Below, piece after piece: positions 1 to 30,645 of a DNA stretch of 33,118 nt (the stretch's first letter is position 1; each line of letters opens with the position of its first letter). The DNA is from Octopus bimaculoides (lineage: Eukaryota), in NCBI RefSeq assembly GCF_001194135.2, contig NC_068994.1:28622053-28655170 (forward strand), in the 5' to 3' direction. The notes below the pieces were generated by a model. It was given only the letters and a program-made list of their open reading frames with translations. It was not told the DNA's origin and did no database searches. Made by a program: the position numbers and the translations under genes.

Positions 1-1102
1 CCAGAGATGCCTCAACCTCAGCGCATGCCTGCGTATCTTTAGCCACCCTTTAGTGGCTGTTGACAACAGATAGAGTGCCTTACAAGAGGCCGTCTGCCCT
101 CCCACAAGAATTTAAAAAGCATGCATTCCAACTTGTTTAGCCACGAATCGGGGCACGGCACGACGGTTAGGCGGTAGGTAATGACAAATGGGTTAAACAC
201 ATTTTCCACCTCCACCCTCCCTTTCAGGGATAGCCTCAGCCCAGCCCAGCCCAGGTCTGAGTTATGAACGCCACCCTGCCCGTAACTTCGCTCCAATTCT
301 TCTCTATCTGGAGGCCTGGACCAAATCAGACTCCAAGCATTTTCACCGGATCGTCTGTCCTGCGTCCGACGACGTTGGACAGCATCGACTTGCCTCTCCA
401 GGTGCCGAGCTGCAAACCGACCGACTTATCTCGGTTAATTCTTACTCCTGCTACCTCTTCGTAATCCTTTAGGGCTTCACCTACCCTCTGTAGGTCCTGG
501 TCCCTGGATACGATGACAATGACATCGTCCGTATATGTTGTGACTGACTTTCAATGCCCTAGATCTTGCGGGTCGCCACTCGTAGCCTCCAATCTTCACA
601 GTAGTGACTCGAGAGTCAATACATACAGCAGGGGCGAGAGTGGACAACCTTGAGAACCGAGCGGTCGATATTGAACGGTTCCGAAAAGAAACCGTTCACC
701 GGAACTACCGACTTGATGTTGCTATATAAAGCATTGATCCAACCGCGGAATGTCGGGCCAAAACCGGCCGCCTCGAGGACCGCCGCCAGATGCCGATGGT
801 CTACCCTATCAAAGGCTTTGGATTGGTCCAAATGGACTAATGCCTCACCGTTGTCAGGAATCCTATTTACGCTTTGTAAGGTATAGCGTATAAGGTGGAG
901 ATTATCGTGCATGGTCCTGCCGGGGATGGCGCAGGCTTGCGCCTCCCCGACGATGCTATCCACGATTTTCGCCAACCTTTTTGCTAAAACCTTGGCCAGA
1001 ATCTTCAATTCTGCATTAAGCAGGTTGATGGACCTAATGTTGCCAGTTACGTCTCCCTTGTTTGGGTCATTTCTGATCAGTTCCACCATTCCCTGGCTCA
1101 CG
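1..1102 (-). mobile_element. 5'-truncated, frameshifted Tx1/L1-clade LINE ORF2 (reverse transcriptase); runs off the left edge of the window
   Basis: Minus-strand translation gives LKILAKVLAKRL, QACAIPGRTMHDNLHLIR, LDQSKAFDRVDH, QGCPLSPLLYVLTLE (after a frameshift near 650), YTDD (~525-537) and FKFLWEGRRPLV...GG. These are hallmark L1/Tx1 RT motifs. Confidence 0.92.
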
Positions 1103-1187
1103 AACTAACTCATTTACTCAGACTGCTCTATTTACATGTAGTGGTCTAGTCCATTCTCGCTAGGGAGCGTCGTACTCTCGCACAACA
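1103..1187 (-). repeat. 3' LTR, first 85 bp only (interrupted by the LINE at 1102)
   Basis: About 91% identical by eye (6 substitutions, 2 indels) to 7547-7633. It starts TG directly after the polypurine tract. Confidence 0.88.
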
Positions 1188-1198
1188 TTTCCTCTTTT
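1188..1198 (-). promoter_or_regulatory. Polypurine tract of the Gypsy element
   Basis: AAAAGAGGAAA on the minus strand abuts the LTR start TGTTGTG. Confidence 0.8.
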
Positions 1199-1550
1199 GA
1201 GATTTCGTGTTCCAAAGGAATAAAGAAATTTTTGTTTATGTATATATATATTTGTATCTCTTTCGTTTGGGCATTATCTCAAGGTGTTCGGTCTGCTTTC
1301 TTTTTCTGATGCTGGTTTTACGGGACTCTGTTACTTTTGGTACCGGTATGTGGAATATTTCACAGAATACTACCATGGGAATTTCTTCATGATCTTGGGT
1401 ATGCTTCTTCCTTAGTTGGTTTTGTATGTATTTTATGTTGACCATGTGACCCTTTAATTAGATACATCATACTTCCAATTTTTCTGATAACACGGCCATC
1501 TTTCCAGCCTTCTGTACTGTTTCTATAGGTTTTGAAATGCACTTTATTAC

Positions 1551-2261
1551 CTATCTCGACGTTTTCCGTTGGCTCTTTCGTATTTTTTTACGTCTTTTTT
1601 TCTGGTAATAGGTTATCAATTCTGCGGGAGACTTCCCTGATTGGGGGATCACTCTGTATATTCTTAAGAAATTTGTCAGTGCTTCGTCTTTACTTAATTC
1701 ATTCTTCGCTTTTCTTAACGCTCTCTTAAAGGTGTCCACAAATCTTTCTACCTGCCGGTTTAACCTCGGGTGGTAGGGTGAAGGGAAAATATGCTTTATC
1801 GCATGTCTTTTACAGAAGTTCTTGAGTTCATACTCAGAGATCTGCGTTCTGTTGTCTGAAACTAGCGTGTCAGGGATACCGTATCGTGCAAACAATTCGT
1901 TTAAGAACTTTGTAGTTGTCTTAAAGGTTGGTCTATAGCACCTGTAAACCTCCGGCCACTTGGTACAGCCATCAACTCTGATTAGGTAGTAAGCGCAGTC
2001 TACGGGTCCGGCATAATCAATGCGTAACCTAGGCCATGGGTTCTCCATCTCTGGCCACGATTGATATTTACCGGCGGGGCTTTGGCCGCGAGTGCGCAAC
2101 CTCGGCACATTCTCACCAAGTTTTCGATATCTCGGTCTGTAGACGGTCAATAGAAATAACTCCTCATCTGAGCCCTCATCCTTGCCATTCCTGGAAGTCC
2201 GCCGTGAAATCGTTGCTATACACCTTTTTGTAATGTAGTTGGAACACTTTTTTAGATCCAT
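1551..2261 (-). pseudogene. Gypsy integrase (rve core), preceded by a deleted RNaseH/IN junction
   Basis: PWPRLRIDYAGP...VDGCTKWPEV...GIPDTLVSDN...PYHPRLNRQVERFVDTFKRAL, a DDE integrase. Confidence 0.9.
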
Positions 2262-2279
2262 ATATCAACAGCAAAGGTC

Positions 2280-4650
2280 TGTGGTCTGTTTGCAATAAAA
2301 AACTTCTGCCATGCAGAAACCAATGAAATTTTTTAACTGCAAAAATAATTGCTAGGTCCTCCTTTTTAATTTAACTATATCTCTTCTCTGCCGCTTTTAG
2401 CGAGCGCGAAACATGAACCACTGGTTTTGTACTTCGTCTTCGTATTTATGAAGTAGAACTGCACCTAATACGTGCTCGGAAGCATCAGATACTACAGTGA
2501 TGACCATTTCGAGATCATAATGTGCTTCAAAAGTGTGCTGGCATTTAGTGGACCAATTACACTTTACTTATTTTAAAAAAATAAGTCGTTCAATGGAGCT
2601 CTTAACTTGTGCATATGTAGCTTTGATAATAGTTTGCTGACCCAAGAAATGCTTGTGAAGTTGGAATATTTGTCGGCTCAGTCATATTCCTTATTGCCTC
2701 TGCCCTCGGCGGGTCAGGACGTCTACCACTTTTATTAAATATTTGCCCTAAGTACTTAATTTGGGGTAGAAAGAATTCACATTTTTCTTCACTCAAAGTG
2801 AACCCGAAAACTTTAATTTTCTTAAACACAGTTTTTATGTGTTCCACATGCTATTCACAAGAATTACTCCTGATCAAAAGATCAAAATATCGTCCAAGTA
2901 CGGGATTGCAAATTCACAATCAGATAACTTAGTATCCATGATTTTCTGGAATATTGCTGGTGCAACTTTTAATCCAAAAGGTAATCGTGTGTATCTGTAC
3001 AATCCTCTGTGTGTATTTATTGGCAAATATTTTGAGTGTTTTCATTTAAAATGTCTTCTGCAGTCGGGAGCGGATGCTGGTATGTTTTTAAGCAGTCGTT
3101 CAATCCTGTAGAGCAGTGGTTCAAAAAAGTTTACGTGCCGGTCTCCTTACAGATTTTTCGAGGATTCACGGTCCCTTATAAAATGCAGGGTAATCAACAT
3201 GGAGAAAATTATATACATTCGTGTACCATAATTTCCGGACTATGAACCGCTCATATCTCATTCGGCATATCTCATTTTCTTTTTTGAAGGCATTATAAAA
3301 AAGATAAAATTCAGTAAACCAATTTAATATCATATATTTATTTCGCATTTATCATATACTACGGGTGTGCATATAAGACTTAGCACAGCTAGCTTTTGGG
3401 TGCACTAATCAACAATAAAGCTTACCTCTCACTAATCCAAAGTGAAATCCAAAAAGTGCATATGAAAATCCTAAGTGCATATGAGCGTTGTTTTGTCCGT
3501 AGATAAATCTCCGCGAATTGATAACCGTTGAGAAGACAGTTCTATCAGAACACGTTGTTATGAAAAACAACCATGCCTTATAAAGCCCAGCCACCATGCA
3601 GGATGCGAATTGGTGGCTGGCAAAGAACACAGTCATGCGGGAACATGCACCGATGAGGATAACGACGGCAAGAGGCATGCAAATGTGTGGACTGCAATAG
3701 TGGAGCGGTGAATCATGTGAGAGTAGAATACCGACAGCACATGCACGATCAACCGTTACACCCGCATATTTTCCATCGGCCAATCACACTTGTTGTACAA
3801 CAAGTGTGATTAGCAGATGAGTGTGTCGGAGTGGCGTGGGTTTTTGAGGCCAACGGCAAAAAAGGATGATAACTTATGAAAAATTGAAAGTCTTGAAATT
3901 TTGTAACGTAACTGTCTCAACCCACCCGTTTTCACGATACTCCAGCTTCCCTTCACGGTCCCCCTAAAGTCGCTCCGCGGTCCCCTAGGGGACCGTGGAC
4001 TCCAGTTAGAGTTACACTGCTGTAGAGAAATCAGCACACAGCCTAATCTTATTATTCTTTTTAAAATACATACCGTGGGTGCCGCCCACTTCGAGCAATC
4101 CACCTTTTTGATGACTCTACTCTTTTTGAGTCTGTCCAACTCTTCATTTACGGTTTCAATTGCCGCGAATGGTACTTTTCTGTTGGCTTTAAATACAGGT
4201 GCAGCGTTTTCACTTACTTGGAAATAGGTCTCTGTCTTTCTACATAGACCTAAATCCTCTGATAACACTTGCGGGAACATTTTTTTCAATTTTTTCATCA
4301 GCAGTTCCGAAGACTTGTTTTTAACGGAACGACCATTTATGTCATTGCAGTAAAAATTTATGGGGAAGTGCCATAAATCGAATAATTCTAACCAATCTGT
4401 CCCAAACAGATTGATTGTATTATCCACAACGAATAATTTTGCTTCGCGTGTCTCTCCTCGAAATGTGACATGAATACATGTTTTACCCATGAAATGTAAT
4501 TTATCGCCTGTTACACCACACGCTATTTTCGCTGTTTTACATAATCTTGGTTTACCAATTTTTTTTCCAAGTATCTGTATTTATAGAGATGTCACTACCT
4601 GTGTCTAACTGAAATTTGGTATTCACATCATTTATTTTTATGTGCACAAA
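2280..4650 (-). pseudogene. Gypsy protease, RT and RNase H, disrupted by the hAT insert, deletions and frameshifts
   Basis: FQLDTGSDISI (~4590-4615), KWAAPTVC, CADFST|GLNDCL split by the insert, RLPFGLKVAPAIFQ..PYLDDILI (~2885-2980), IKYLGQI, VSDASEHVLGAVL (RNase H, ~2460-2500). Confidence 0.9.
3114..4019. mobile_element. 906-bp non-autonomous hAT (Charlie/Buster-like) element inserted in the Gypsy RT
   Basis: Exact 8-bp TSD CTGTAGAG at 3106-3113 and 4020-4027, close to the NTCTAGAN Charlie preference. Ends read CAGTGGTTC... and ...GTTACACTG. Removing the insert restores RT CADFSTGLNDCL. Confidence 0.88.
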
Positions 4651-4662
4651 TTTCTGTTTCAA

Positions 4663-5330
4663 TCACTTCTCCGCTGAAAACACCTTAGAACTTTTTGTGT
4701 TTGAGCCTCGTAGTCTTCTTCTACAATGAGAACTCCTGTGTCCCAGTTTCTGACAACTATAGCACTTTTTGTTTTTAAATGGACAATCCTTTTTATAGTG
4801 TAGGCCTCCACAACCATAACACGGATTGGGGGCCTGACACTTTTTTTTATTGTGCTTCCCGGGACACATTTGAATTTCCGCAGAGTTTTTTTATCTTGTA
4901 TTTTTTTCACATCGTGTTTAAGATAATCTGACATTCTTCTGCGATGGTCTGTAGAGATAAATCCTGGTTCGCTTGCTCCACATTCGAGAAAATCCTGGTC
5001 CGAATTTCTCTATCTTCAGGGGCTGTAAGTCCTTGCACGAAGATAAGTGATTTGAACATATCCTGAGTGAGGTTCCTGGAGTTTGAAATTTTCGCACATA
5101 CGGTTGACTGCTCCGGTGTTGGTGATAAAATCATCCTCCACATTTTTTGTTAAGTTTCAACACTCCATTCTGGTGTTGAATAATGAACTTCTATCACAAA
5201 AAAAAAAAAAAAAAAAAAAAAAAATTTAAAGCAGTTCCGTGACGCAGAAATTGTATTTGTTTTGCAACTCCTGTAGCTGCTCCTGTTGCTTCTCTTGAAG
5301 CTGTATTGCTGCGGTTAATAGATTTTCCAT
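4663..5330 (-). pseudogene. Gypsy gag, internally deleted and frameshifted
   Basis: ATG at 5330 (MENLLTAAIQLQEKQQ), SLIFVQGL..EIRTRI, and two zinc knuckles CYGCGGLHYKKDC and CYSCQKLGHRSSHC. Confidence 0.85.
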
Positions 5331-5370
5331 GACGCAGAAATTGTCAAATAACCAATGTGAGTTTCGAACG

Positions 5371-5383
5371 ATCCTCCTCGCCA
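5371..5383 (-). promoter_or_regulatory. Primer-binding site, tRNA-Ser(GCT) type
   Basis: TGGCGAGGAGGAT matches TGGCGACGAGGAT (complement of the tRNA-Ser-GCT 3' end) at 12/13. It lies about 40 nt upstream of the gag ATG. Confidence 0.8.
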
Positions 5384-5386
5384 GAT

Positions 5387-5577
5387 TTATATCCTAATGG
5401 ATAAACGAATACACTGCAACAGTGTTATAACAATATAATCGAAACAAACGGCAGTAACCACATGGAACATAACAGCAATATTTTAAGAACCAACAATCCG
5501 ACACGCTAACTCGAACTGTAAACTTTGAATTCCACCTTTGAACTGTCAACACACGAACTGTAGAACTAGCAGGAACT
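5387..5577 (-). repeat. 5' LTR, distal (R/U5) segment
   Basis: Lies between the AATAAA end of the LINE insert and the PBS. It resumes with AGTT, the same motif that ends the 7547-7633 segment. Boundaries are inferred. Confidence 0.6.
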
Positions 5578-7296
5578 TATTTCTTTATTACCCATACGTA
5601 GCCAACATAGAGGGGACAGTACAAGGACAGACAAAAACACAAAAGTGGGAACCAAAAAATCGAATAAAAAGGATGAATTAAATAATGAAATGAAAAATGA
5701 AATGAAGCCACTCGACCCCACATCCGGGCGACTTCATTTACCTTTGTTATATACGATAATTTACTTATTTCAAAACACTTTAAACCTTATCCGCCACATA
5801 GAATGTCTATATAGTTCGTTGTAATCTACCGTTGTTGGTATACAGCTGGTGTCGATTTTCTTTTGCCAGTGAAAAACATTGTTCCTGTTTTCTTCCAGTC
5901 CTGATGTGTATTTAGGGTCCACTATCACGCAGTCATAGTAAGAGGGCACCTCCCTACACTCTACAGTGATTAACTTTATCCGCTCGTCCCAACTGTCTAC
6001 CTTCTTAGATAGCTTAGAATGTCTTGCATTGTAAATCACTGTACTTTTTTTTTTTCACAGATTGGGGGTTGGGAAATTTGGGGTTCTTGTGCGCTTGTGG
6101 TTAATTTGTCAGTGTTAGGTGAGGTAGGGTGAAGGTTAGTGTCTGCAGGGGAAGGGTGGAGCAGTGTGGGTGTGAGTGGGAGTCGGGTGGATGTGGGATG
6201 GGGGTTATCATTTACAGATTGTGCCTTTTTTCTCCTCTTTCTGCTCTTCTTTCCTGCAGTTTCCCACCCGTCTTTGGTTTTATTTTCTCCTTCTTCCTCT
6301 GTGCTAACCTCTCTTCTGCTGGTTCTCACCGGCGGTGGAGGTGCAGTTTCTATTACGATCATAGGTGCCTCTTGTGACTTTAGGGGTGGTGGAGGACATT
6401 CCACTCTAATGTGGCCTTTTTTTGCCACATTTGTAACAACGTGGGATCCTGCCCTCCACTCTAAGCCTGAGTATTACATCTTCGACTGTAATGGTGTCCA
6501 CTATATTTTCTAGGTTCTCCGGGGCTGCCTGGATTACCATATCCAGTCTCTGCCCTTGCCAATTTTATGTGGAGTGCTGGTAGCTTGGAGGACCACTATC
6601 TTTTTTTCCATGCCCAGCAGTATAGCAGCTACTAGCCAGGCCACATTTATTTCCAGAGGTATGTCTTCTACTCTTACCCTGGAAGTACGTCTTCCATGGC
6701 ATATGGGCAGAAGTACCACCTCATTAGTTTTTAAAGGGGTTGCCGAGTGTACCCTGGCAGTTGATTCATCTCAGAACAGCACCTCTACCGTTCTAAACTT
6801 TCTTTCTCTGGCAAGGTAAGAAATTCTCTGCCAGAAGGGGTTTAACGCCTTTTCAATTTGAATTGTCGTCATTCATTCGATTTTCTTGGTTTTGACAGAG
6901 TAAGTTCCATAGATTATCATTTTTTTTCTTTGATTTTCTGTAATACTTCTTGAGGAGGGAACACCTTTATGTCGTTCCCCTCCTTATGAAGCATATTCTT
7001 GTATTTACTAAGTTCCTTTACATCAATTTCTTTGTTGTGGCTTTTGGTCACGGTCGCAAAATTAATTTTTCCTTCTTTTTTGTCTATCACATAAATTGCT
7101 TTCAGCAGTTCTATCTCGGAAGAACTCAGATTGTCGTTCTCCATTTTTTAACACTATGCTACCCCCAACACGTCAACAAAACTGCTGTAACGCAGCAAAA
7201 CAAAGCGTTGTTCAACACAAAACAAGTAGAATAAACAGCAATTGAACAATACAGCAATTAATTTACTACAAATACGCCTTTTAACACTAGTACGAT
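5578..7296 (-). mobile_element. ORF1-only Tx1/L1-like element (HAL1-like): 5'UTR, frameshifted ORF1 (7144-5770), 3'UTR with AATAAA
   Basis: ORF1 pieces join across frameshifts, two of them at A-runs: ...RVEGRIPRCYKCGKKGHIRVEC (CCHC)...DGWETAGKKSRKRRKK. No EN/RT follows. AATAAA is at 5584-5589. Confidence 0.72.
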
Positions 7297-7546
7297 GATT
7301 TTATTCAAACCACAAAGGTTAAACAAATAGGGGATAATACACGGGACAAATGGGGTCGGGAACTTATTGAATAAGATTACATAGATGAATAAATACATTA
7401 TAATTTCGGATGAAAATGAAAAAAATGAATGGACGTGGAATGCGTTTGACCCCACCAACCACATTCCTGCATTGAACCATTTACTTCGTCCTTTAATTAG
7501 GCACCTACAAACCCAACATTCAGGCTACTTTCTCGCATCTTTTTTT
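7297..7546 (-). mobile_element. ~250-bp 3' end of a Tx1/L1-like LINE (ORF2 tail plus 3'UTR)
   Basis: Shares ordered motifs with the 3'UTR at 5578-5769 (GTAAATG, GTGGGGTC, TTCATTT..TTCATTT, GTTCCC, TGTCC..TCCCCT, AATAAA at 7300-7305). It begins KRCEKVA*MLGL*, resembling an ORF2 C-terminus. Confidence 0.6.
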
Positions 7547-7629
7547 AACTAACTCAACTTACTCAGACTGCTACTATTTACATGTAGTGGTCCAGTCCAT
7601 TCTCGGCAGGGGGCGTCGTACTCTTGCAC

Positions 7630-7633
<4 letters not shown>
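7547..7633 (-). repeat. 5' LTR, proximal 87 bp, flanked by a (CA)n tract
   Basis: Direct repeat of 1103-1187, starting TGTTGTG. Confidence 0.88.
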
Positions 7634-7670
<37 letters not shown>

Positions 7671-8159
7671 GTGCAAAAGTCTTCGGCCACTTTAAACTAT
7701 TGTAAATTTCTTCTAGTTGTGGATGTTTCGCATTGCGTTTTTTACAGATGAAACATTGGCCCTGTTGGAGTCATTTCCATACCTAATCATTATATTTTGT
7801 AGTAGGGCTTCTGAATGAGATGGGAAGATGTGAGACAACCACCAAAAAAGACCGTGCAAAAGATTTCGGCGACCTCACATAAACCAATCAATATAGTGTT
7901 TTAAAACAGAAAAATGTCTATAATGAAAATTTATTATATAATGTTCATTTCAAGAAGTCACTGTACATTGATAATATTTTGTGTGGCTTCTCTTAGCTTG
8001 AATAATTGCTTCAATGTGCCAAGGAAGAGATGCATACAAACCCTGCGCTATCTTCACAGTTATGAGATGCCATTGGGGATTGGTGATTTGCAGTACTGTT
8101 CGTGGGGGTTAATTTGTAATGGTGAACTTGGTGCAGGCAGTGCTAGGGGTGGCTGGCAC

Positions 8160-8370
8160 TAAGAAGGCATATCCGGGTTGTCAGCTGCCAGTGGCTTGAA
8201 ATTTACCAGAAGGGTGTACCTCTGGCGACAACAATACAATACCTCATACCTTTTGTTGATGGATACTGCGGGTTGGTAGATGATATGCAATTTTTCACAG
8301 AGGCACAGCTGGCAACTGGGGGTGCCGGGTGAATGTGATAATAATCTACTTAATGCTGGGTGTTTCATCT
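8160..8370 (-). mobile_element. Penelope-like element, GIY-YIG C-terminal fragment
   Basis: CQLCLCEKLHIIYQPAVSINKRYEVLYCCRQRYTLLVNFK matches the C..C..EK...I....NKR.E....CRH end of PLE endonucleases. Confidence 0.75.
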
Positions 8371-8485
8371 CAGAGGGAGAGCGACGCTAAGACAAAATGT
8401 TCAAATGGCTAACAGAGAAAAAAGTTATTGAGGATGGGTTATCTCTTCTGGACCAGAGGATAAATGGACATTAGGATCTATTTCG

Positions 8486-9718
8486 TTAAGGTTTCTTATT
8501 AGCTGAAACAGCAAACGGGAAAACCCCATTTTCCAGCAGGTAGCGCTTGAAATGAACACATTTTGAGAAAATTTCTTTACGAATATTTAATGCGCCAGGC
8601 TTAGCATAGTTCTTATGAATTTTGATTCACTCTGTGATGCAGATTTTGCAGTGCCCGCTCCCATTAGTATATGGGCTTGGATGTTCTATCATCTTCCACC
8701 TGATATCATATGGAGGTCTCTTGATCTTTGAAGTGTCACACATGGCCAGCGATGTGACAAACTATCTTTCTGGAACTCTGTAGGATGACTGGTGGTTGCA
8801 GAAGCGTTGCTTGAAATCTGTGCTGGCCAATCTGATATATTTCCAGGTTTGGGTACTGGCTATATTTGCATTCCTGGTGTATCTCTGGTAGGCTCCAGGC
8901 CTGAGGATGTTGTTGGTGTCACTGGTGTTGATATTGTCATTATGGCGGTTGGTCGAGCGGTGCTAGTATGTCTGTCGTCGCCATAGTTGTTATCACTGTG
9001 GTTGTAGTCTCTGGTCATATGGTTGGTGCTGATGCTGCTAGCGGTGGTGTGGGTGCTACTGCTGGTAACATAGCGTGTGAGGTCGGTTACTTCCTCAGTG
9101 TCGATGATACTAGTCTGGTCATCATCTCTGGCTGTGGTGATGGTTCTGTGGTCATCAGTTACCTCCTCTGTGTCATTGGTACCTGACTGGTCATCATCTC
9201 TGGCTGTGGCATTTGTACTGGGATCGATGGCGCTAGAGTTGGTGATTCTGCTACCATTGTTGTTGGATGTTACATCGCTGGTAATGTGGTTGCGAGGTCT
9301 AGGTATCACCATAGCCTCATAGATGACTCCTTCGGCCTCGCATCGGCCCCCTACTGTACAGTTCTTGTACACTCTGCAAGAGCAACCTGCCTCCTCCTTT
9401 GATTTGTGGGTGCTATTAAAAATACTTTTTATGTTTGGGGCACAACTAAAGGAGACCTTTAGGTTGTGCCTGTCAAATAAATACCTGTATCTGTGTGAAG
9501 TGTTTGTCTATTAATCTGAAGAATATCCTTCCCACACAAGTCTTGACATTGAGTGAGAAGGGTGGGGCAAACCAAATGACGTTTCGGCGGCGCCTCCTTT
9601 TCCAGGTGCTAGGGCCTGGGATGCAATCCTTAAACCCAATAGATACCAGTGCCTTGTTGTAGTAGGGGGCAGTGGTGCCGAAGATATATTTGGCTAGAGG
9701 ATAGGTTCAGGATCCTCA
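8486..9718 (-). mobile_element. Penelope-like element: RT C-terminal region plus GIY-YIG endonuclease, frameshifted
   Basis: RILNLSSS..F..TAPYYNKAL...RRRRNVIWFAPPFSLNVKT.VGRIFF.LIDKHF...KVSFSCAPN...CSC...C..GG.C...GVIYEAMV ... KYIRLASTDFKQRFCNHQSS ... YDIRWKMIE...CKICITE...LNIRKEIFSKCVH. Confidence 0.88.
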
Positions 9719-10132
9719 ACAGGGTTTGCAGGATATCCTCGTCCAGCTCTACAGATCTTCCAGGGCGAGGTTCATCTTCTAGGGTGTTGTTTCCGGTTTG
9801 GAATTTCTGAAACCACCGTTGACATTGGCTTACACTTATTGTCCGATCCCCATATACTGCATTAATATTTCTCGCACTTTCTGTTGTGTCGTTGGCCTTA
9901 TTGAACTCATAAACCAAAATATTCCAAATATGCATCTTTGTCACTTCCATTTTAGCTTTGAAAAATAACTGTTAAAATCAAACTGCACTCTTCAAAACTT
10001 GCACTAAGAATAACTACAAGGTAAAATTACTACCTGCTTTTATAGCAAGTTGATGCAGGTAATTTATCCCATCCCCCTCCGACTTTTAGTTCATGCAATT
10101 GAAAACACTGCATTATTCGTGGGATGACCCAG
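9719..10132 (-). mobile_element. mariner transposon, left end and transposase HTH region, truncated by the PLE
   Basis: TA|CTGGGTCATCCC terminus at 10132. ORF MEVTKMHIWNILVYEFNK...QRWFQKFQTGN.TLEDEPRPGRSVELDED is a mariner N-terminal HTH. Confidence 0.85.
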
Positions 10133-10141
10133 TATATATAT

Positions 10142-10954
10142 NNNNNNNNNNNNNNNNNNNNNNNNNNNNNNNNNNNNNNNNNNNNNNNNNNNNNNNNNNN
10201 NNNNNNNNNNNNNNNNNNNNNNNNNNNNNNNNNNNNNNNNNNNNNNNNNNNNNNNNNNNNNNNNNNNNNNNNNNNNNNNNNNNNNNNNNNNNNNNNNNNN
10301 NNNNNNNNNNNNNNNNNNNNNNNNNNNNNNNNNNNNNNNNNNNNNNNNNNNNNNNNNNNNNNNNNNNNNNNNNNNNNNNNNNNNNNNNNNNNNNNNNNNN
10401 NNNNNNNNNNNNNNNNNNNNNNNNNNNNNNNNNNNNNNNNNNNNNNNNNNNNNNNNNNNNNNNNNNNNNNNNNNNNNNNNNNNNNNNNNNNNNNNNNNNN
10501 NNNNNNNNNNNNNNNNNNNNNNNNNNNNNNNNNNNNNNNNNNNNNNNNNNNNNNNNNNNNNNNNNNNNNNNNNNNNNNNNNNNNNNNNNNNNNNNNNNNN
10601 NNNNNNNNNNNNNNNNNNNNNNNNNNNNNNNNNNNNNNNNNNNNNNNNNNNNNNNNNNNNNNNNNNNNNNNNNNNNNNNNNNNNNNNNNNNNNNNNNNNN
10701 NNNNNNNNNNNNNNNNNNNNNNNNNNNNNNNNNNNNNNNNNNNNNNNNNNNNNNNNNNNNNNNNNNNNNNNNNNNNNNNNNNNNNNNNNNNNNNNNNNNN
10801 NNNNNNNNNNNNNNNNNNNNNNNNNNNNNNNNNNNNNNNNNNNNNNNNNNNNNNNNNNNNNNNNNNNNNNNNNNNNNNNNNNNNNNNNNNNNNNNNNNNN
10901 NNNNNNNNNNNNNNNNNNNNNNNNNNNNNNNNNNNNNNNNNNNNNNNNNNNNNN
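10142..10954. other. Assembly gap (N); further gaps at 12035-12639, 22382-22602, 28077-28086, 30194-30247, 31309-31972
   Basis: N runs, several of them bordered by microsatellites. Confidence 1.
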
Positions 10955-11876
10955 TTTAAGTATAAATTGATTTCGAAAAAATGTTCCGGTAAATGGCGGA
11001 GGAATAACATTTGGGTGTGGTTGAACGGAGGGTGTAATTATTTTTAAGCTTCCAAGGGAAATAACCCACTCCCTCATTCGTAAATTATTTGGTAAAAATG
11101 AAATAGAATATCCTTATTTCTTAGTATTTGAACTATTTTAGTTATTTTCTCAATTTATCCAGTACAACGCTTAAACAAGTAAATATAAACTTCACACGCA
11201 CATTGCTTATGTGTCTGGGGAGGTTTTAAGTATAAATTGATTTCGAAAAAACGTTCGGGTAAACATTTGCAGCTGACAGGCTAGGACTTCAACGGTCCCC
11301 AAGTAAGTTTTGGCCATTAAAAGCTTTCACTTACCATCCCAGAAAACAGAATTTCACAGAAGCATGTTATGCCTTCATTTCAACCATTGCAAAAATCAAC
11401 AAACAGAGAAGAAGCACCGCAAAACAAAGACGCACCACATGGCAGTACAACGCCATCTGACGATGCTAGTCGGCAGACTGATATCTGAGGGTCGCATCAA
11501 GTGTCTTCTAGTGGCAGAACCTTGAACTACAACGGGCTTGTCCCACAGAGAATGTTTCTGGTTACTTTTGGGTACCCTCTCATATATATCTGAGTTTGTA
11601 TGATTGTGTATAGAACAATATATTAATCCCTGAAATTCCAACTTCATCTGATTTTTACATTTTTTGCAAAATAATAAAATGTGAAAATCAGATGAAGTTA
11701 GAATTTCATTGATTAATATGTATATATATATAATATAATAAATGCAGAAACTGATTTCTGTGTGTCAGTGTGTCACACTTTGACCCCCCTCTCTCACTAT
11801 TCAATGACACTTCTTCATGCTGGGGTAAGAGTAATCGTAGGCATAGTGACGGTGAGGGCAGTGGTGAAGACAAGGT

Positions 11877-11999
11877 GAGAGAGAGAGAGAGAGAAAGAAG
11901 GAAAAAGAGAGGGAGAGAAAGAGAGACAAAGAAATTTAGGGAGAGTTGATGATGTTTTATTAAAAGTTGTAGTGTTGATAGCTGCAATGGCAGTAATGA

Positions 12000-12034
<35 letters not shown>
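11877..12034. repeat. (GA)n tracts and GA-rich low-complexity DNA
   Basis: (GA)n at 11877-11894 and 12004-12034, the latter running into a gap. Confidence 0.95.
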
Positions 12035-12899
12035 NNNNNNNNNNNNNNNNNNNNNNNNNNNNNNNNNNNNNNNNNNNNNNNNNNNNNNNNNNNNNNNNNN
12101 NNNNNNNNNNNNNNNNNNNNNNNNNNNNNNNNNNNNNNNNNNNNNNNNNNNNNNNNNNNNNNNNNNNNNNNNNNNNNNNNNNNNNNNNNNNNNNNNNNNN
12201 NNNNNNNNNNNNNNNNNNNNNNNNNNNNNNNNNNNNNNNNNNNNNNNNNNNNNNNNNNNNNNNNNNNNNNNNNNNNNNNNNNNNNNNNNNNNNNNNNNNN
12301 NNNNNNNNNNNNNNNNNNNNNNNNNNNNNNNNNNNNNNNNNNNNNNNNNNNNNNNNNNNNNNNNNNNNNNNNNNNNNNNNNNNNNNNNNNNNNNNNNNNN
12401 NNNNNNNNNNNNNNNNNNNNNNNNNNNNNNNNNNNNNNNNNNNNNNNNNNNNNNNNNNNNNNNNNNNNNNNNNNNNNNNNNNNNNNNNNNNNNNNNNNNN
12501 NNNNNNNNNNNNNNNNNNNNNNNNNNNNNNNNNNNNNNNNNNNNNNNNNNNNNNNNNNNNNNNNNNNNNNNNNNNNNNNNNNNNNNNNNNNNNNNNNNNN
12601 NNNNNNNNNNNNNNNNNNNNNNNNNNNNNNNNNNNNNNNGAACACCATAATTGTGGTTTTATTTTTTGCTTTCTTTAATACGTACATACATATTTAGTAG
12701 AAAGTGGGTTATACATCTTTAGATTGTATACCTGACTTTCTACTAAAAGATTAAAGAAATTGACGGAACGCTGAACTCCAGACTAAACAACTTAAACAAC
12801 ATTTATTTACTTGGTAAAACATACATATCTTTTAGTTATACATCTTTAGAGGTGAGAATAACGAGCTGTCGAGTATAAGACCGAAAGATGTAGAGACAG

Positions 12900-13015
12900 C
12901 TTTAAACACACGTCCTTGCTCAATCGCTGGCCAGCGAGAAAGAGAATGAATTGAGCGGGAAACGCTTGCTTGTTTAATTTTACGCATGCGTAAGACTATG
13001 CATGCGCAGGCGTTA
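12900..13015. promoter_or_regulatory. CpG-enriched candidate promoter with NRF1/Ewg-like GCATGCG motifs
   Basis: TACGCATGCGTA and TGCATGCGCAGGCG at ~12981-13012 in a locally CpG-rich, otherwise non-repeat stretch about 1.9 kb upstream of the zinc-finger ATG. Direction unknown. Confidence 0.3.
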
Positions 13016-13089
13016 CTACACATACATACATACATACATACATCTCTCTTTCGGAGAGGCACAAGTACCTATACACAGATATACACACG

Positions 13090-13246
13090 CAGCAGTAACT
13101 TCTGCCTACCAAATTCAATTACAAAGCTCTGTTCGGCCTGAGGCTATAGCAGAAGACACTTGCTCAGGGTGCCACGCGGTGGCACTGAACCTGAAACCAT
13201 ATAGCTGGGAAGCAAGCTTCTTAACCACACAGCCATGCCTGCACCT
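13090..13246 (-). mobile_element. tRNA-derived SINE head (family A)
   Basis: Reverse complement of the 27932-28076 head, with A box TGGCTGTGTGG and B box GGTTCAGT. Confidence 0.88.
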
Positions 13247-13362
13247 ATATATATGTATATGTATATGTATATGTTTGTGTGTGTACATATATACATACAC
13301 ACACACACACACACACACAAAATACACTTCAATTGAAATACAGTTTTCCAAAATTAAACATA

Positions 13363-14480: not shown

Positions 14481-14888
14481 CATTTCCTAATCTTAGGAAT
14501 ATTTAACTGCTATTTCTAGAAATTCAAGGTTCCTTCATTGAGTGTGGTGAACATAGATATACATCAGTTAATATTCAGTTATCTAACCCTTTCCACTCCC
14601 ACAATGTGTTTTGGAAATGCATGAACATCACAACTTGCCCTTTTCATGTTTTCAAAAAAGTGGTTGTATTTATTATTGTATGTTCTTTTTATTGTTTATT
14701 TGTTTATCTAAAGCTAAAATGAATTATTTTATTTTCTACCATCTACAGAGCGTGTCGAGAGCAGCAGTGTTTTGTCAACTGACCATTCCATGAATGAGGT
14801 AGGATCTGTCTTACATTCCTACTTCTTGTAAAAGTGTTCAAGTCATCAAGTGAACCAAGGACTAGACTCAAGTGACCAACAACACATC

Positions 14889-17012
14889 ATGCTATTCGAC
14901 TGCGATGAGTGTATGAATCTTTCGGTTCAAAACAGTACATCAATGCCATGTAAAAAGAGAATTAATTCTTACAATGACAGCAATCCATATAAATGCCAGA
15001 TGTGCAACATCAGTAATAAGGGTGGCTGCTGTGGAGATGATAATGAGGAGCAAGGGGAATGTATCAACCCTTCATCCTGTGGAAGTACATCATCATATGG
15101 AGGAGACTGCTCTATGTCATGTGCGGAAAAGAACTGTAACTTTCAACTACCCCCACTACCAATGCCACCACCCTTATCAGGAAGATCACCAATGCAGGGT
15201 AATCCACTTCCACCCAAGCTGTTTGACTGCAAGATCTGCTGGAAAGCATTCAGTCAGCGATCCCATGTTAGTGTTCACAAACAGATCCATTCTGCAGTTT
15301 TGCCCTACAAGTGTGATCTGTGTGAAAAGAGCTTCCCACGTTTGCAAAACTTGGAACGTCACAAGAAAACACACGAGGATGGCAAATTGTTCAACTGTGA
15401 AGTTTGCAGTAAAAGTTTCCGCCAGCGATCGCATCTCAAGGCTCATACCCGTGTGCATTCAGGGGAGAGACCATTCAAGTGTGAGGTATGTGGTTATGCA
15501 TTTTCTCGAAATGGCAATCTGGCCAGGCACAATAAAATGCACAGATCCAAAAAGAAACACTTGTTTGAAAATTCATCATCAGAAAATGCTCTGGTTCTTC
15601 CACTTAAAAATGCTTCGAAAAAGAATGGCAAGTTACACAAAAATGGTTTTCTTAACAAAAATACAAACAAAGACTGCTTGATTTACAAGAAAGGAAATTT
15701 ATTAGACTGTGCCATTTGTTGGCGTGTTTTCAGCCAACGTTCACACGTTAGTGTCCATCGGCGTATTCACAAGGCTGTTCAGCCTTATCAGTGTTCACTT
15801 TGTGGCAAATCTTTTACCCAGTATGGCAACATGCTAAGACACAAGCGTCTACATATGGGCGAACGTAGGTTTGTCTGCAATGTATGTCCAAAAGCCTTTA
15901 CACAGCGTACACATCTGAAAGTGCATCAACGACTGCACACAGGAGAAATGCCATTTAAATGTGGCATTTGTGGTTTCTCTTTTACCAGGAATGGCAATCT
16001 CATGCGTCACATGCGGCTTCATTCAAAGTTAGGGCAATTTGGCCCTCCTGCAACGAACATTCCTGAGACTGGACAAGCTGTGTTCCCACAAAACCTGCAT
16101 TTAGATGAAGACGACAAGGATGGAAGTAACTGCAACATGGGTTTGGTGACTAATCAAGGTGAGGAGTGCGACCATGCAGATGACACAGACAACATGCAGT
16201 TAGACTGTGGTGCTTGCTGGAGGAACTTCACACGTTCACAGCAAGTGAGTAGCAGCAACAAATGGATGCAAACATTTGCTTGCAACATCTGTGGCAAAGG
16301 TTTTACCAACACGAATGACTTGGACCGCCATCAACGTGTACATATGCCTGGTGCCAAGCGATTCCCATGTGAAGTGTGCCACAAGACCTTCTCACAGAAA
16401 TCCCATATGAAAGCTCACATGCGGATACACACTGGAGAGCGACCATACAAATGTGAAGACTGTGGCTATTCATTTTCCCGTGTCGGCAACTTGATACGTC
16501 ATAGGCGTGGGAACAAGAAGAAAGGAAAACGGTGGAGTTGTGTCAACAGACGCAACCTTGAATCAGTTCCTATTAGCATCCCTAATACACCCATCAGTAT
16601 CACTTCAGCCACCACTACCTCCACTACAAACAACAACAACAACAACAGCAGTAACAACAGTAACAATAACAGCAATAACGGTGACAGCAACAACAATATC
16701 CAGTCAAGTGCTGACACCAAAGAGTTGCCCAGAGAAACTTCTCAACAAAACCTTCCCACCCAGATGGTGACCAGTGGGGTGGAAGAGGGCAGTATCACCC
16801 CTGTCACTAGCAGTGTTGCTAGCAGCAGCAACAGTAGCAGCAGTGAAAACCAATCAGGTACCAGCCCTCTCACTCACCAAGTTGGTATCCCACATCAGAT
16901 GTCTGTCCACCCACGACACTCCAACATGTCACACCACACCAGTGTGACTTCACATCATAGTAGCAGCTCATTGGGACAGGATCACCAGTTAGGGTTGTCT
17001 TCTGCACAGCAG

Positions 17013-17044
<32 letters not shown>

Positions 17045-17543
17045 GCAGCAGCAACAACAACAACAGCAACATGCATCACTTCCACAACTTCCTCCACCCC
17101 CACCTCCACCCCCACCCCAGACACATCACCAGCATCAACCACAAACGCCACACCCAACAGGTATGGGGGGTCATCACCATCCTCATCACCCCCATCAACC
17201 GCAACAACAGCATCATCATCATCAACAACAACAACAGCAACAGTCCCATTCCCACCATCAATCACTCAGCCTCCCACCCCACCACCCAACCAGCGTCCTC
17301 TCGCAACACACAAATGTCTCCACACATCCACTTGGCATGCCACATCATTCCAGCCTTCCACGTCACCTCAACATGATCCAACCCCACCCAGCGACCGTGC
17401 CACACCAGCTCAACGTGCTGCAGCAACACCATCACCACCAGCATGCTGGTGCTGCACCGCACCAGCTTGGCATATCACAACAGCTTAACCTCCCACACCA
17501 CATCAATGTCCCACTCTACATCAATGTACCAACCTCCACATAA
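14889..17543 (+). CDS. C2H2 zinc-finger protein: Cys-rich N-terminus, 10 canonical plus 2 degenerate fingers in three 4-finger modules, N/S/Q/P/H-rich C-terminal tail
   Basis: Uninterrupted ORF; the first ATG is at 14889 and the frame opens at 14832. Finger modules lie at 15222-15542, 15702-16022 and ~16200-16514 with (T/S)GE(R/M)P linkers. It includes Q21 (17007-17069) and P9. An upstream exon cannot be excluded. Confidence 0.93.
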
Positions 17544-20228: not shown

Positions 20229-20626
20229 TAGCTTCAATTGTCATTTACAGGAATTTGTAGACAAAGATATACTAAAAAAACCATCCAGCAAGCTAAAAGT
20301 CTTCAATGTTTTCAGTGCCAATAAACATAACATACCAAGACATTTTCTATCTTTTATGAATTTGACTATCAGGAACTAACTGACATCACAGGACAAAAAT
20401 ATCACCAGCGTCAACTGCACAGTGGCTTGAATCTTATGATGAAGGCTATAAGATCTTCACTGATATCATTGGTGTCATTTCTTAACATCACATCATAACA
20501 TGGACTCAATCCCTTATCATACTATGATTTTTACAATATCATGTTGCAAGTCTTGTTATGTCTTGTTTATAAATGGACCCTAGTATAAACTATAACATTG
20601 GGCTTGACAATCTCAAACAATGTGTG

Positions 20627-20658
<32 letters not shown>

Positions 20659-20856
20659 TGTATATGTATATATCAGTCCATGAATTCCTATTCTTGGTCA
20701 CTGGAGTGAATTAATTTTCAAATACTTACAATCAAATCTTTACTCTACAAATATATTGAGTTCTCTCTTTCCTGGAGGATGTCATATCTAGTAAACTATA
20801 CTTATTCTTCAGCATATGTGCATATGTAAATATATATAGATGTGTGTATCTATGTT

Positions 20857-21096: not shown

Positions 21097-21450
21097 AGTG
21101 CAGAAGTGGCTGTGTGGAAAGAAGTTTGCTTCCCTACCTCATGATTCTGAGTTCGGTTCCACTGCATTGCACCTTGGGCAAGTATCTACTATGGCTTCAG
21201 ACCAACCAAAGTTTTGTATGTTGATTTGGTAGAGGGTAACTGAAAGAAATCAGTTGTGTGTGTGTGTGTGTGTCTTTGTATCTGTGTTTGTTCCCCGCCA
21301 CTGTTTGACAACTGGTGTTGGTGTGTTTATGTCCCCACAATTAACAATTCAGCAAACAAGACTGATAAAATAAGTACCAGGCTTTAAAAAAAAAAAGTAT
21401 TGGGATTAATTCATTTAACTAAAATTCCACAAGACAATGCCTCAGCATAG
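21097..21450 (+). mobile_element. Family A SINE: head, (TG)n, tail
   Basis: Homologous to 27932-28330; contains the CORE-like CCTTGGGCAAGT motif. Confidence 0.85.
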
Positions 21451-23274
21451 CTGCACATTTGTACATACACACACTCACACACACACACATTACACACACA
21501 AAACATCATTAGATAGTTTCAAATCAGAAAAGTAGTATCACAAAGAAAATAATTCCTTCCAGCGGATTTGCATATGCAAATAGTGATTGTATAGGGAACA
21601 CATTGTTTTATTTGTTACTTATTTATTTCATAGTTATTAGTAGATCAGTCTAAAATCTGTGGCTTATGTACTTCAGAAACATTAAGTGATGTATATAATT
21701 ATCAAAATAGAGAACCTTGACAAGTGTAGCCATTTCGTAAAGTACTTTCTGGTTAACAAGAGATGCTCTTGATTCCTCACATAAGGATTGATTTTGTACA
21801 TTTTCTTTCACTCCTTCATTTAAAACTTAATTTACTTTGGAAAACACTTTCCCATTTTCTTTCTTCCCATCAAAGAGAAACTAACTAAAAAGCAAAACAC
21901 TTTTCATCATCAGGTCCTTGCAATAACAAGAGACACCTGTACATATATTATTTAAGGCACTTTACAAAATTTTCCAATTGATGCCTTCTCTGTTATAGTA
22001 TAGGTGATTTTTCTGACTTGAGTCTATTTGATGAATGCCTACATGCATGAAATTTCAAGTTATCCGTATTTGAATTTTCAGTTCTTCACTCTGTTCTCAA
22101 AAAAATTTATGTATCTGTTGATAAATATGTGTATATATGGCTCTGACCACCTGCATGTTTATATATGAATATAGAAATTTACACACACACACATACACGT
22201 ACACACACATGCGCACACACACACACACACACACACATTCATTGAAATTCATTCATATCAGTCTTTCTTTTCTAGCAACATTTCATATATTATTAATCAT
22301 ATTGATTAAAAAAGGAATTTTATATCTGAATAATTATTTTCTGAGTAAGACCAGGAAAATATAGACTGATCTTTGCTGTCCNNNNNNNNNNNNNNNNNNN
22401 NNNNNNNNNNNNNNNNNNNNNNNNNNNNNNNNNNNNNNNNNNNNNNNNNNNNNNNNNNNNNNNNNNNNNNNNNNNNNNNNNNNNNNNNNNNNNNNNNNNN
22501 NNNNNNNNNNNNNNNNNNNNNNNNNNNNNNNNNNNNNNNNNNNNNNNNNNNNNNNNNNNNNNNNNNNNNNNNNNNNNNNNNNNNNNNNNNNNNNNNNNNN
22601 NNGAGATAATTAAGGTCACCAGTCCAAATGATACAACATATTGAATTGTTTTAGGACATTTTATACAAACACACACACGCGCACGCACACACACATGCAC
22701 ACACACACTCACACACACACAGACACACACACACACACACACACATGTATATAATGTATGTGGGCTGACCAAAACGCTGTAAGTGAATTTAGTAGATGAA
22801 AATTTAAAAGGCCACAACTGGAGGTAGAAATGAGTCTATGTTAACAAGGGTTGTAAACAAAAATCCTGAAATGGAATTCTATTTGACAAATTTTCTAGGC
22901 AAGATGGAGTTATCTTCCTCAGATCTGTTCTAGTTACATCTGAAAGGGTCAGCATAATGGATGATTACTTTTCAGTAGTCATCAAGCAGAGAATTCCATG
23001 TTTCTAACATGAATTTTCTCTGATGAGCAACACACATACACATTTCTGGTTTCTGAGTCACTCACCTTGATACCTGATTATGCTTTCTTTTTTCCTAATA
23101 ACTGTGTATTCATTTGTTTATTTGTTTCCAGTTTAAAAAAATATTTATTTATTTGTTTATGTTTCTGAAGAGTTGGGATAAATTTTGAATCCAGTGAAGA
23201 ATATGTAAAAGAGATGAACAGCTGATCAAGAAATCCTAATTTTTGTCTTTGATACCCGGTGACTGGAATATCTA

Positions 23275-27800: not shown

Positions 27801-27931
27801 AAGTCACCAAAGCAGAAGTTTATCAAATATGTACTGTCTCTTACAAAGTGACATAAAATGAGAAAAAAGTATGGGGATGTCATACTGCTCCAAAAGTATT
27901 GTCAACAGAAAAGAAAAAATAAACATATTTT

Positions 27932-28330
27932 ATAGGCGCAGGAGTGGCTGTGTGGTAAGTAGCTTGCTTACCAACCACATGGTTCTGGGTTCAGTCCCAC
28001 TGCGTGGCACCTTGGGCAAGTGTCTTCTACTATAGCCTCGGGCCGACCAAAGCCTTGTGAGTGGATTTGGTAGACGNNNNNNNNNNATATATGTATATAT
28101 ATATATATATATGTATGTGTGTTTGTGTGTCTGTGTTTGTCCTCCCACCATCGCTTGACAACCGATGCTGGTGTGTTTACGTCCCCGTAACTTAGCGGTT
28201 CGGCAAAAAGAGACCGATAGAATAAGTACTAGGCTTACAAAGAATAAGTCCTGGGGTCGATTTCCTCGACTAAAGGCGGTGCTCCAGCATGGCCGCAGTC
28301 AAAAGACTGAAACAAGTAAAAGAGTAAAAG
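27932..28330 (+). mobile_element. Family A SINE, best-preserved copy: tRNA-like head, CORE-like motif, internal (TA)/(TG) microsatellite, ~200-bp tail
   Basis: A box TGGCTGTGTGG, B box GGTTCAGTCC, GCACCTTGGGCAAGTG. At least 5 head and 4 tail copies occur in the window. Confidence 0.9.
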
Positions 28331-28865
28331 AGTATATGATGGTCTACCAGTATTACCAAATAGCCCTGACATTCAGTGGACTTCTGTTCCTGCAATACAT
28401 TGCTAATCAACTTCCAGATGTGCTCTCCAGCACATCTCCTTTGCCATCCTCTGGGACAACGCTATTTCCATTTTGTCTGCCAGAACCATGAGGCAGATTA
28501 ACACGCGTTTTTAGATATTTGGTGCTTTTGAAAGATAGAGATGGTATATCATGGGTGTGTTAAACCAGATGGTTGGTTACCATAATATAATTACATTTTG
28601 CTTATATCATAGTTTAACAGCAGCCAATTGCTCATAAACTTGATATCACCCATTGAAAGAACCTCTATGTAGTTACTCAGTCTGCTAGAAATAACAGCTA
28701 AACCTCATTATACAACACACACATATCCACAGATATTTTGATGATTGAGTTTAGGCTGTGAGTTTATATCAGTATCCTTGGGATCAACAATTAATCCTAT
28801 TTTCCATCAGTTGTGGTCATTACAATAGAATATAAACCATGTTTTACTTGTTAAACTTTGTAAAT

Positions 28866-29030: not shown

Positions 29031-30247
29031 TATATATAAAATAGATGGACACAACAAGCATCCATTAGTAGCTTAATCACTAGTTCATTTAATAATTAAT
29101 GACATTAGAAGAGAACACTAATTACATGGGTTGTGGAAACATTTAATAAACAATGATAGTTATTGCGTTGACATAACTCAAGTTAAGAAGCAGGAATGAG
29201 AAGTGTATGCCTTCCAAATGGTATGACTAATGTAAGGCAAATGGTTCCAAATAAGAATCAACACACTGACTCATTTCAACAAGAGCTACATGCCCACATC
29301 ACAAAATATTTTATATGCCAACAAGCTAGTCTTTATGTAGTCATTCAACTAACTAGAAATAGGAGCTAAATATCCCACATTAGATTATATAACCTGAAGA
29401 GACATCAATCATGGAAAATAAAAAAAACAATGACAAGGTTTGAATGGCTACAACAAAAAGATACATTGATGAAAGTAAACAACAAATGAACATTTTCAAA
29501 TTGGTTTATTGTTAGAAATAACAGCCACATATTTTCTTCATAAAAATAGCAGTCTTTACTACAATGGAGAAGAAAATGTAAGTCACAGGAGAAATGCTTC
29601 AAGTGTAATCAGTGAAATTTCTGATTAAAAAGAATTATAACAAAATTGCAAAATATTTCAAACTTGTATTTTGCCATTGAAAAGCTGCCCTGAGTTGTCT
29701 AAGTTGTTTGTGAAGTGAAATGTAATTAAAATTTATAACTGTCATAAGGAATACCCTAAGGCACAGTTTCTTAAACTGAGTTCTTTGAGGAATTACTAGA
29801 GTACCATAAGATAAGGCGTCTTTTTACTAAAATTTTATTTTATAAAAAATGGTATTCACTGTTTTCAAAATAGTAACCATATCAGTGACTAGGTCACAGA
29901 TGGCGCAATGAAAATTTTGATACTGAATAATGAATGTAGTTTTGTGCATTTTTTAATAGTAGTATGTGTCTTTCACACTGTAATAATTTTGGTGTCAACA
30001 CATAGTACTGGATCAAATCACTTGCCTGGCAAGTATATCTCAGAATTCTCTATCTAGAAGAATTTTTATTTCATTTAAAACATAATGAAAATATCACAAA
30101 GAGCTATGTCATTAAACTACAGGTAGATGTAAGTATGTACATACATGCACGTATATATGCATATACTCATTTATTATTTATATATATATATATNNNNNNN
30201 NNNNNNNNNNNNNNNNNNNNNNNNNNNNNNNNNNNNNNNNNNNNNNN

Positions 30248-30645
30248 TGTGTGTCTTTGTGTCTGTGTTTGTCTCTCACCACCACTTAACTAGTGTTGGT
30301 GCGTTTACATCCCTGTGACTTATGGTTCAGCAAAAGAGACTGATACAATAAGTACCAGACTTTAAAAAAGAAAGTCCTCAGGTCAATTCATTCAACTAAA
30401 GTCCTTCAAGGTGGTGCCCCAGCATGGCCACAGTCAAATGACTAAAACAGGTAAAAGATAAAAGAGATATGTGTGTGTGTGTGTGTGTGTGTATATGTTT
30501 GTTCCCCAACACCACTTGACAACTTGTGTCAGTGTTTTACAGCCCTGTAACTTAGTGGTTTGGCAAAGGGACCAATAGAATAAAAACCAGGCTTTAAAAA
30601 AATAAATAAGCACTGGGATTGATTCATTCAACTAAAAAGAGATAA
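30248..30645 (+). mobile_element. Two tandem family A SINE tails separated by (TG)n
   Basis: 30248-30465 and 30490-30645 each align to 28120-28330. Confidence 0.82.

Follow-up and report, generated by a model that had tools for sequence, protein, structure and literature searches.

A LINE lineage of the L1/Tx1 type that probably prefers one position in the long terminal repeats of a Gypsy lineage in Octopus

LINE activity in the octopus genome has drawn attention. The locus described here raises the question of whether a long interspersed nuclear element (LINE) can return repeatedly to one and the same position in the long terminal repeat (LTR) of another retrotransposon. The stretch analysed, hereafter called the window, comprises 33,118 nucleotides of Octopus bimaculoides (assembly GCF_001194135.2, contig NC_068994.1, positions 28,622,053 to 28,655,170), and contains near its left end a decayed Ty3/Gypsy element on the minus strand, each LTR of which is interrupted by LINE sequence (Table 1). 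From the data set out below, an octopus LINE lineage of the L1/Tx1 type probably integrates repeatedly at one LTR position of a K02A2.6-like Gypsy lineage.

The interruption of both LTRs at the same nucleotide by different LINE copies, as proposed in a first-pass annotation made from the letters alone, is borne out by self-BLAST. The only match between the two regions aligns 7633-7547 (5' LTR) with 1187-1103 (3' LTR) at 90.8% identity over 87 columns and terminates precisely at 1103/7547. By direct reading of the minus strand, both LTR copies open with TGTTGTGC and close with TGAGTTAGTT; beyond TGAGTTAGTT the divergence is complete, the 3' LTR continuing with CGTGAGCCAGG... and the 5' LTR with AAAAAAAGATGCG..., and there is a 1-nt ambiguity at the 3' LTR junction, where the C at 1102 may be an LTR or a LINE base. 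Since the sequences adjoining the common break differ, the inserts cannot have arisen by LTR copying in the course of Gypsy replication, a point which the first-pass annotation had rightly made. The simplest reading is that a single nucleotide received two or more independent LINE integrations. LINE fragment C in the 3' LTR would represent a separate event at the nucleotide also used in the 5' LTR, where fragment A and unit B would represent one or two events. Fragments A and C differ in their 5' truncation, yet both adjoin TGAGTTAGTT in Gypsy sense orientation. For random insertions, use of the same nucleotide (±1) in the same orientation within an LTR of about 280 bp would have a probability of ~0.002-0.005, given landing in the LTR. 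That A and C might derive from a single LINE split by a deletion was also considered, but was judged unparsimonious and rejected, since the start of such a deletion would need to coincide exactly with the junction to the LTR.

Table 1. Coordinates of the Gypsy element, its LTRs and the inserted elements in the window.
Feature	Position	Strand	Description
LINE fragment C	1..1102	-	Reverse transcriptase; 5'-truncated just before reverse transcriptase motif 1; continues past window edge
3' LTR, left part only	1103..1187	-	85 bp; adjoins polypurine tract
Gypsy internal region	1188..5383	-	K02A2.6-like Ty3/Gypsy, decayed; gag CCHC, protease, reverse transcriptase, RNase H, integrase
MITE-like insertion in Gypsy reverse transcriptase	3114..4019	-	906 bp, non-coding; CAGTG...CACTG termini
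5' LTR, right part	5384..5577	-	AGTTCCTGCTAG...GGATATAAATC, then primer-binding-site-like sequence; direct reading
LINE unit B	5578..7296	-	1.7 kb; short 5' untranslated region, decayed ORF1, 3' untranslated region ending AATAAAGAAAT(A)
LINE fragment A	7297..7546	-	250 bp, strongly 5'-truncated; ~15 C-terminal ORF2 codons and 3' untranslated region; ends GAATAAAATC
5' LTR, left part	7547..7633	-	87 bp, TGTTGTGC...TGAGTTAGTT; 90.8% to 1103-1187

The interrupted element is a Ty3/Gypsy retrotransposon of the K02A2.6-like type, as seen from its LTR pair, primer-binding site (PBS), polypurine tract and the order gag, protease, reverse transcriptase (RT), RNase H and integrase. Directly ahead of the 3' LTR copy lies the polypurine tract AAAAGAGGAAA (1198-1188), and the PBS-like sequence TGGCGAGGAGGATCG, also given as TGGCGAGG, is found at 5383-5369, directly after the right part of the 5' LTR (5577-5384). 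Its internal domains were recognized by Pfam matches to rve and zf-CCHC, and frame analysis revealed many frameshifts. The Pol layout is supported by tblastn with P0121 and by the Pol homologues, which carry RVT_1, RT_RNaseH and rve in that order. Homologues of the element number 598, the best at 46-54% identity, and none among them is a copy of the same family, the closest reaching 54%. The LTR, roughly 280 bp as a whole, is split after its position 87; the right half of the 3' LTR falls outside the window. The Gypsy RT is itself interrupted by the 906-bp insertion, across which Pol homology resumes and which is flanked by a perfect 8-bp duplication, CTCTACAG (4027-4020 and 3113-3106, direct reading); it resembles a miniature inverted-repeat transposable element (MITE) of the hAT type.

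In related Gypsy copies (ENA assembly ERZ21867824), the LTRs measure 239-254 bp and are LINE-free, and the LTR end of locus L085, GGATATATCA, resembles the window LTR end GGATATAAATC. Because the LTRs of the relatives are clean and the ends are alike, the left and right parts in the window are taken to make up one whole LTR, with the LINE as the insert. The possibility that the sequence past the break might be LTR rather than LINE, which the first-pass annotation had itself named as a refutation, is thereby ruled out, the related LTRs being clean at 252 bp. A 19-mer conserved in both window LTRs, GACCACTACATGTAAATAG, gave 0 matches in the metagenome, viral and prokaryote collections.

Fragments A, B and C, which are the only three pieces of this LINE lineage in the window, all lie at the LTR site. 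The 3' region of fragment A aligns with the 3' ends of unit B and of L001, the closest RT relative of fragment C, and its segment AAGATG...GCCTAA was matched by eye to the end of the L001 open reading frame (ORF) 2. Fragment C (52% G+C) contains three frameshifts and several stop codons and is recognized as RVT_1 (Pfam, E=1.9e-30), with 1213 homologues; it shares 63-65% amino acid identity with the metagenome proteins P0001/P0002, the former carrying RVT_1 and zf-RVT with the motif CPRC..H....C, and 66.7% nucleotide identity with L001. The LINE of L001 ends in ...CCAATAAAAGAAATC and has a similar 3' untranslated region (UTR). In L001 (2019-2105), 29 or more ATT repeats run from CCAATAAAAGAAATC to the end of the contig, constituting either a simple-repeat tail or a microsatellite insertion. 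In a metagenome scan with the RT alignment, all LINEs recovered (L003-L082) were distant, with identities of ≤43%; the NCBI match P0006 is a 1.5-kb contig devoid of flanks, and 20 window ORFs, including variants starting with M, had no exact match in the protein collection.

Unit B encodes an ORF1 with an RNA recognition motif (RRM)-like region and a CCHC knuckle, which the ORF1s of L084, a locus of O. sinensis described below, match at 6863-6424 with 33-42% identity (tblastn). Its tail is matched at L084 positions 9043-9160 (74%), 16618-16719 (71%) and 20649-20704 (88%). In tblastn of the window, no RT or endonuclease match and no ORF2 could be detected in the unit. It is an ORF1-only, HAL1-like non-autonomous LINE, composed of ORF1 and a LINE tail and lacking ORF2. 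In the full-length LINEs of L002 and L088, the latter from the cuttlefish Acanthosepion pharaonis and with ORF1 upstream of ORF2, a B-type ORF1 precedes a C-type ORF2 with apurinic/apyrimidinic (AP) endonuclease, RT and C-terminal CCHC motif, from which A, B and C are assigned to one lineage of the L1/Tx1 group. The ORF2 of L002 gave Pfam matches to Exo_endo_phos and RVT_1, with a zf-RVT ORF downstream. The predicted L1-group architecture, that is ORF1 followed by an ORF2 with AP endonuclease, RT and CCHC, is thus assigned through these relatives, the window itself contributing RT and ORF1 only. The named matches among the RT homologues of fragment C are uninformative as to the clade, and membership of the octopus LINE in the Tx1 clade is putative, with indirect support from the repeat annotation of O. 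vulgaris, in which L1-group LINEs are annotated as L1-Tx1 (PMC13282606). L002 contains two 4.6-kb LINE copies (1662-6295 and 8636-13255) of 96% identity, which are separated by 7 kb, share one orientation and show neither a common flank nor a target site duplication (TSD); identity falls to 69% in the ORF1 regions upstream of them, and the two may be chimeras or members of different subfamilies.

A corresponding arrangement is found in a second species. L084, a 21-kb stretch of O. sinensis that contains 0 N and comes from a chromosome-level assembly, was found via the Gypsy homologue P0239, and its Gypsy element shares 52% Pol identity with that of the window, the RT regions being 66% identical at the nucleotide level. 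Its LTR start, TGTTGTGTGG..., follows the polypurine tract and is homologous to the window LTR start (score 40; shuffle mean 18.1, standard deviation 3.6, maximum 34). About 66-72 bp into this LTR begin two head-to-tail LINE units, both ORF1-only and of the same structure as unit B; they are 58% identical to each other, and the first ends in ATAATAAAGAGAAA. Between L084 and the window, the LINE units share 57% nucleotide identity in ORF1 and 71-74% in the tail. The 100-bp segment following the L084 units recurs (82%) just upstream of the PBS-like sequence on the 5' side of the Gypsy element, and it is by its position before the PBS and its 82% duplicate alone that this segment is assigned as LTR; homology between it and the right part of the window LTR was not significant. 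The 5'-side copy is preceded by a third LINE unit with the same tail, which shares 68% identity with unit 1 but only 58-70% with unit 2, the one in the corresponding position. Because the third unit resembles unit 1 and the flanking repeats are 82% identical, the L084 units are no simple duplicates of a single composite LTR. Taken together, all six LINE-type units in 54 kb of Octopus DNA (A, B and C; three in L084) reside in an LTR of the Gypsy lineage in sense orientation.

Further elements are present at L084. At 16717-16816 and 16817-17218, the downstream LTR is followed by a PBS-like/leader sequence, TGACAAAGGTACGCC..., a CpG-decayed copy of TGGCGAAGGTACGCC, suggesting a tandem or recombinant array of LTR elements. 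Right after it sits a short interspersed nuclear element (SINE) that is 88% identical to window 27960-28338. A different, SINE-like retroposon of ~230 bp is located at L084 20650-20900 (minus), its last ~60 nt being 88% identical to the 3' end of unit B. It has the tail ...GTCCCCTCTATGTTTAGCTCCCTGTGGGTAATAAAGAAAC and a B-box-like GTTCAAATTCC, lies between the two copies of a perfect 19-bp duplication, AGATAACAGTTACTTCATA, and occupies a site that has no relation to an LTR; no tRNA head was found in it by ARAGORN or Rfam.

Several observations weigh against a preference of the LINE lineage for this LTR position. The evidence stems from four LTR contexts in 54 kb, and L084 is not a random sample. 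The window lacks an endonuclease domain, no LTR of this family with an empty site was found, and three further copies of AGTTAGTT, in which the break lies, are unoccupied in the window. At 20366-20383 (minus), TCAGTTAGTTCCTGATAG agrees with the reconstructed empty site TGAGTTAGTTCCTGCTAG in 16 of 18 positions and contains no LINE; the chance expectation of such a match is ~0.001-0.005, and the match is unexplained. This stretch was also considered as an intact LTR copy, which was rejected for want of homology in the flanks (score 48; shuffle mean 42, maximum 61). The tetranucleotide AGTT, whose presence on both sides of the insert had been put forward as a possible short TSD, occurs 10 times in the LTR and is so frequent there that it is uninformative in this respect. 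At L084, the junctions between LINE and 100-bp repeat differ by ~50 nt, and the start of the 5' LTR is missing. Moreover, the full-length LINE copies of L002 and L088 lie neither in LTRs nor near Gypsy elements, and, because the SINE-like retroposon of L084 occupies a non-LTR site, the machinery using this tail can insert elsewhere. Of the LTR-targeting, site-specific LINE postulated in the first-pass annotation, a site preference is likely to hold, with the same association recurring in O. sinensis, while strict specificity is put in doubt by the same-tail element and the LINE relatives outside LTRs.

Three other explanations have to be weighed. According to the first of these, which is considered unlikely, a single ancient LINE insertion in the U3 region of an active Gypsy element would have been copied to both LTRs of its descendants, so that the composite LTR was inherited and no targeting took place; deletions, nested insertions and unequal recombination among elements would subsequently have produced the differences now seen between LTRs. 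A LINE situated in the U3 of a 3' LTR would in fact be passed on, the association is common to two Gypsy families whose LINE units are about as diverged as their RT regions, and the PBS-like sequence after the downstream LTR of L084 is a sign of recombination between elements. However, the sequences adjoining the break differ between the two window LTRs, for which a deletion would need to start exactly at the junction, and A and C would still require two fresh insertions at one nucleotide. At L084, the repeat-adjacent units are not counterparts of each other (58-70% versus 82% for the flanking repeats), and the stacked units are just 58% identical to each other.

The second alternative, regarded as improbable, is a LINE that lacks specificity and prefers a short and common kind of nick site. 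The (AGTT)2 run would then be the one good site that the LTR happens to contain and a local hot spot, with resident copies attracting more, and the LTR as such would not be targeted. This would agree with the position of the break in AGTTAGTT inside an AGTT-rich stretch, with the (ATT)n run beside which L001 ends, with the dispersed SINE-like element of the same tail and long TSD, and with the L002 and L088 copies outside LTRs. Against it, the three other AGTTAGTT sites of the window are empty, as are about nine further occurrences of AGTT within this LTR, all units have a single orientation, and the O. sinensis insertions occupy the same region in an LTR of diverged sequence; tail-targeting, too, fails to explain the stacking, as A lies at the head of B and not in its A-rich tail. 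Coincidence of two unrelated LINE breakpoints, or a scaffold mis-join in repeats, could be invoked for a gapped draft scaffold that has six runs of N and whose Gypsy/LINE region is made up of repeats throughout, but is highly improbable: positions 1-8400 are free of N runs, the chance of a shared nucleotide and orientation is as low as that calculated above, and the pattern recurs in another species at L084, a locus with 0 N in a chromosome-level assembly.

Based on repeated integration at the LTR site as the preferred explanation, the following scenario would apply. Autonomous members of the lineage, equipped with ORF1 (RRM-like region and CCHC) and ORF2 (AP endonuclease, RT and C-terminal CCHC), would integrate by target-primed reverse transcription at a single LTR position, which, counted from the LTR start, lies at ~87 bp in the window and at ~66-72 bp in O. 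sinensis, and always in Gypsy sense; the sequence preference would presumably stem from the LINE endonuclease. The lineage would give rise to 5'-truncated copies and to ORF1-only copies, the latter presumably mobilised in trans. All members would end in AATAAA(G)AAAT without a poly(A) tail, and successive integrations would stack head to tail.

In both species, a TATA-like box is located 21-33 nt upstream of the LINE junction (TAAATA in the window, at positions 54-59 in the left part of the 5' LTR; TATATATA in L084), which would place the insertion site near the predicted LTR transcription start. Since the site lies past this box, and the units have very short 5' UTRs (23 nt ahead of the ATG in unit 2 of L084) and a polyadenylation signal at their end, their transcription may be driven from the LTR promoter. 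Copies in a 3' LTR could, in addition, be carried along by Gypsy replication, and targeting and hitch-hiking may both contribute. The most far-reaching version of this scenario would be a LINE lineage specialised on the transcription start of the Gypsy LTR in sense orientation, with the LTR promoter expressing promoter-less LINEs and their ORF1-only parasites and Gypsy replication multiplying the 3' LTR copies. This is put forward tentatively and is, on balance, doubtful; if true, it would amount to a three-layer parasitism, with a LINE and a half-LINE living on an LTR element.

The remainder of the window is rich in short repeats. Those at 27921-28338, 32933-33118, 13100-13260, 21100-21451 and 30248-30637 represent one or two families with 74-90% mutual identity; they are also found in L084 (88-90% identity), and their tails are unlike that of the LINE. 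An intact ORF of 897 codons at 14850-17543 (+) encodes a C2H2 zinc-finger protein with 11 zf-C2H2 matches and a long Q/H/P-rich tail, 97-98% identical to the "finger 665-like" protein of O. vulgaris (P0241); the Gypsy/LINE complex is situated 7-14 kb upstream of it. Together with the short repeats, this protein points to an Octopus other than O. vulgaris as the source of the window. The six N runs (10142-10954, 12035-12639, 22382-22602, 28077-28086, 30194-30247 and 31309-31972) all lie outside the Gypsy/LINE region.

Sequence-specific LINEs of the Tx1 type living in other transposons are established, and the octopus case does not constitute a new category. Many families of the Tx1 clade are target-specific (Kojima 2015, PMC4494074), the criterion applied there being that more than 20% of the copies are flanked by the same target sequence. 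Xenopus Tx1 has a piggyBac-type transposon as its home and Tx1-Mar a Mariner; within Harbinger families, Tx1-9_AMi is found at a fixed distance. Stacking of elements at transposon targets and, for the transposon-targeting Tx1 group, a dependence on flanking transcription have also been proposed or described (PMC4494074). The octopus LINE shares with Tx1L in Tx1D of Xenopus, with Tx1-Mar and SINEU in Mariner-N4_AMi and with Tx1-9_AMi in Harbinger the use of one site inside another transposon family and the formation of composite elements. Tx1L, Tx1-Mar and Tx1-9_AMi have DNA transposons as targets and are documented by many copies, whereas the octopus target is an LTR, seen in four contexts. 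With R1/R2, Keno, Kibi and Koshi it has in common the single nucleotide, the fixed orientation, the 5'-truncated copies and the tandem stacking, but these elements are directed to host multicopy genes or simple repeats (rDNA, snRNA, microsatellite), and R2 possesses a restriction-like endonuclease, while the relatives of the octopus LINE have one of the AP type (Exo_endo_phos in L002). HAL1 (half-L1) of mammals resembles unit B and the L084 units in having kept ORF1 and the LINE 3' end in the absence of ORF2; it is dispersed, is not known as target-specific, and its ORF1 is of a type different from the RRM-like and CCHC-containing ORF1 of octopus.

Genome-wide confirmation would make the octopus lineage the first target-preferring LINE to be documented from a cephalopod. 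Landing of a LINE in an LTR would then also have a well-resolved example, with position, orientation and stacked ORF1-only derivatives, and the case would bear on the transcription of promoter-less LINEs and on transposon "safe havens" in the repeat-rich octopus genome. The closest published counterparts are the crocodilian Tx1-8_Crp and Tx1-4_AMi, Tx1-clade LINEs with LTR retrotransposons as targets (PMC4494074), whose mention, less detailed, is the sole published one and shows the earlier statement that no example had been described to be incorrect. What they have in common with the octopus LINE is the LTR-retrotransposon target, stacking at a transposon target being reported in the same paper. 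They are vertebrate families, given without detail on the position within the LTR element (PMC4494074), and the octopus case is set apart from them by its cephalopod host, by a defined point in the LTR, some 25-30 nt past a TATA-like box, and by occupants that are mostly ORF1-only.

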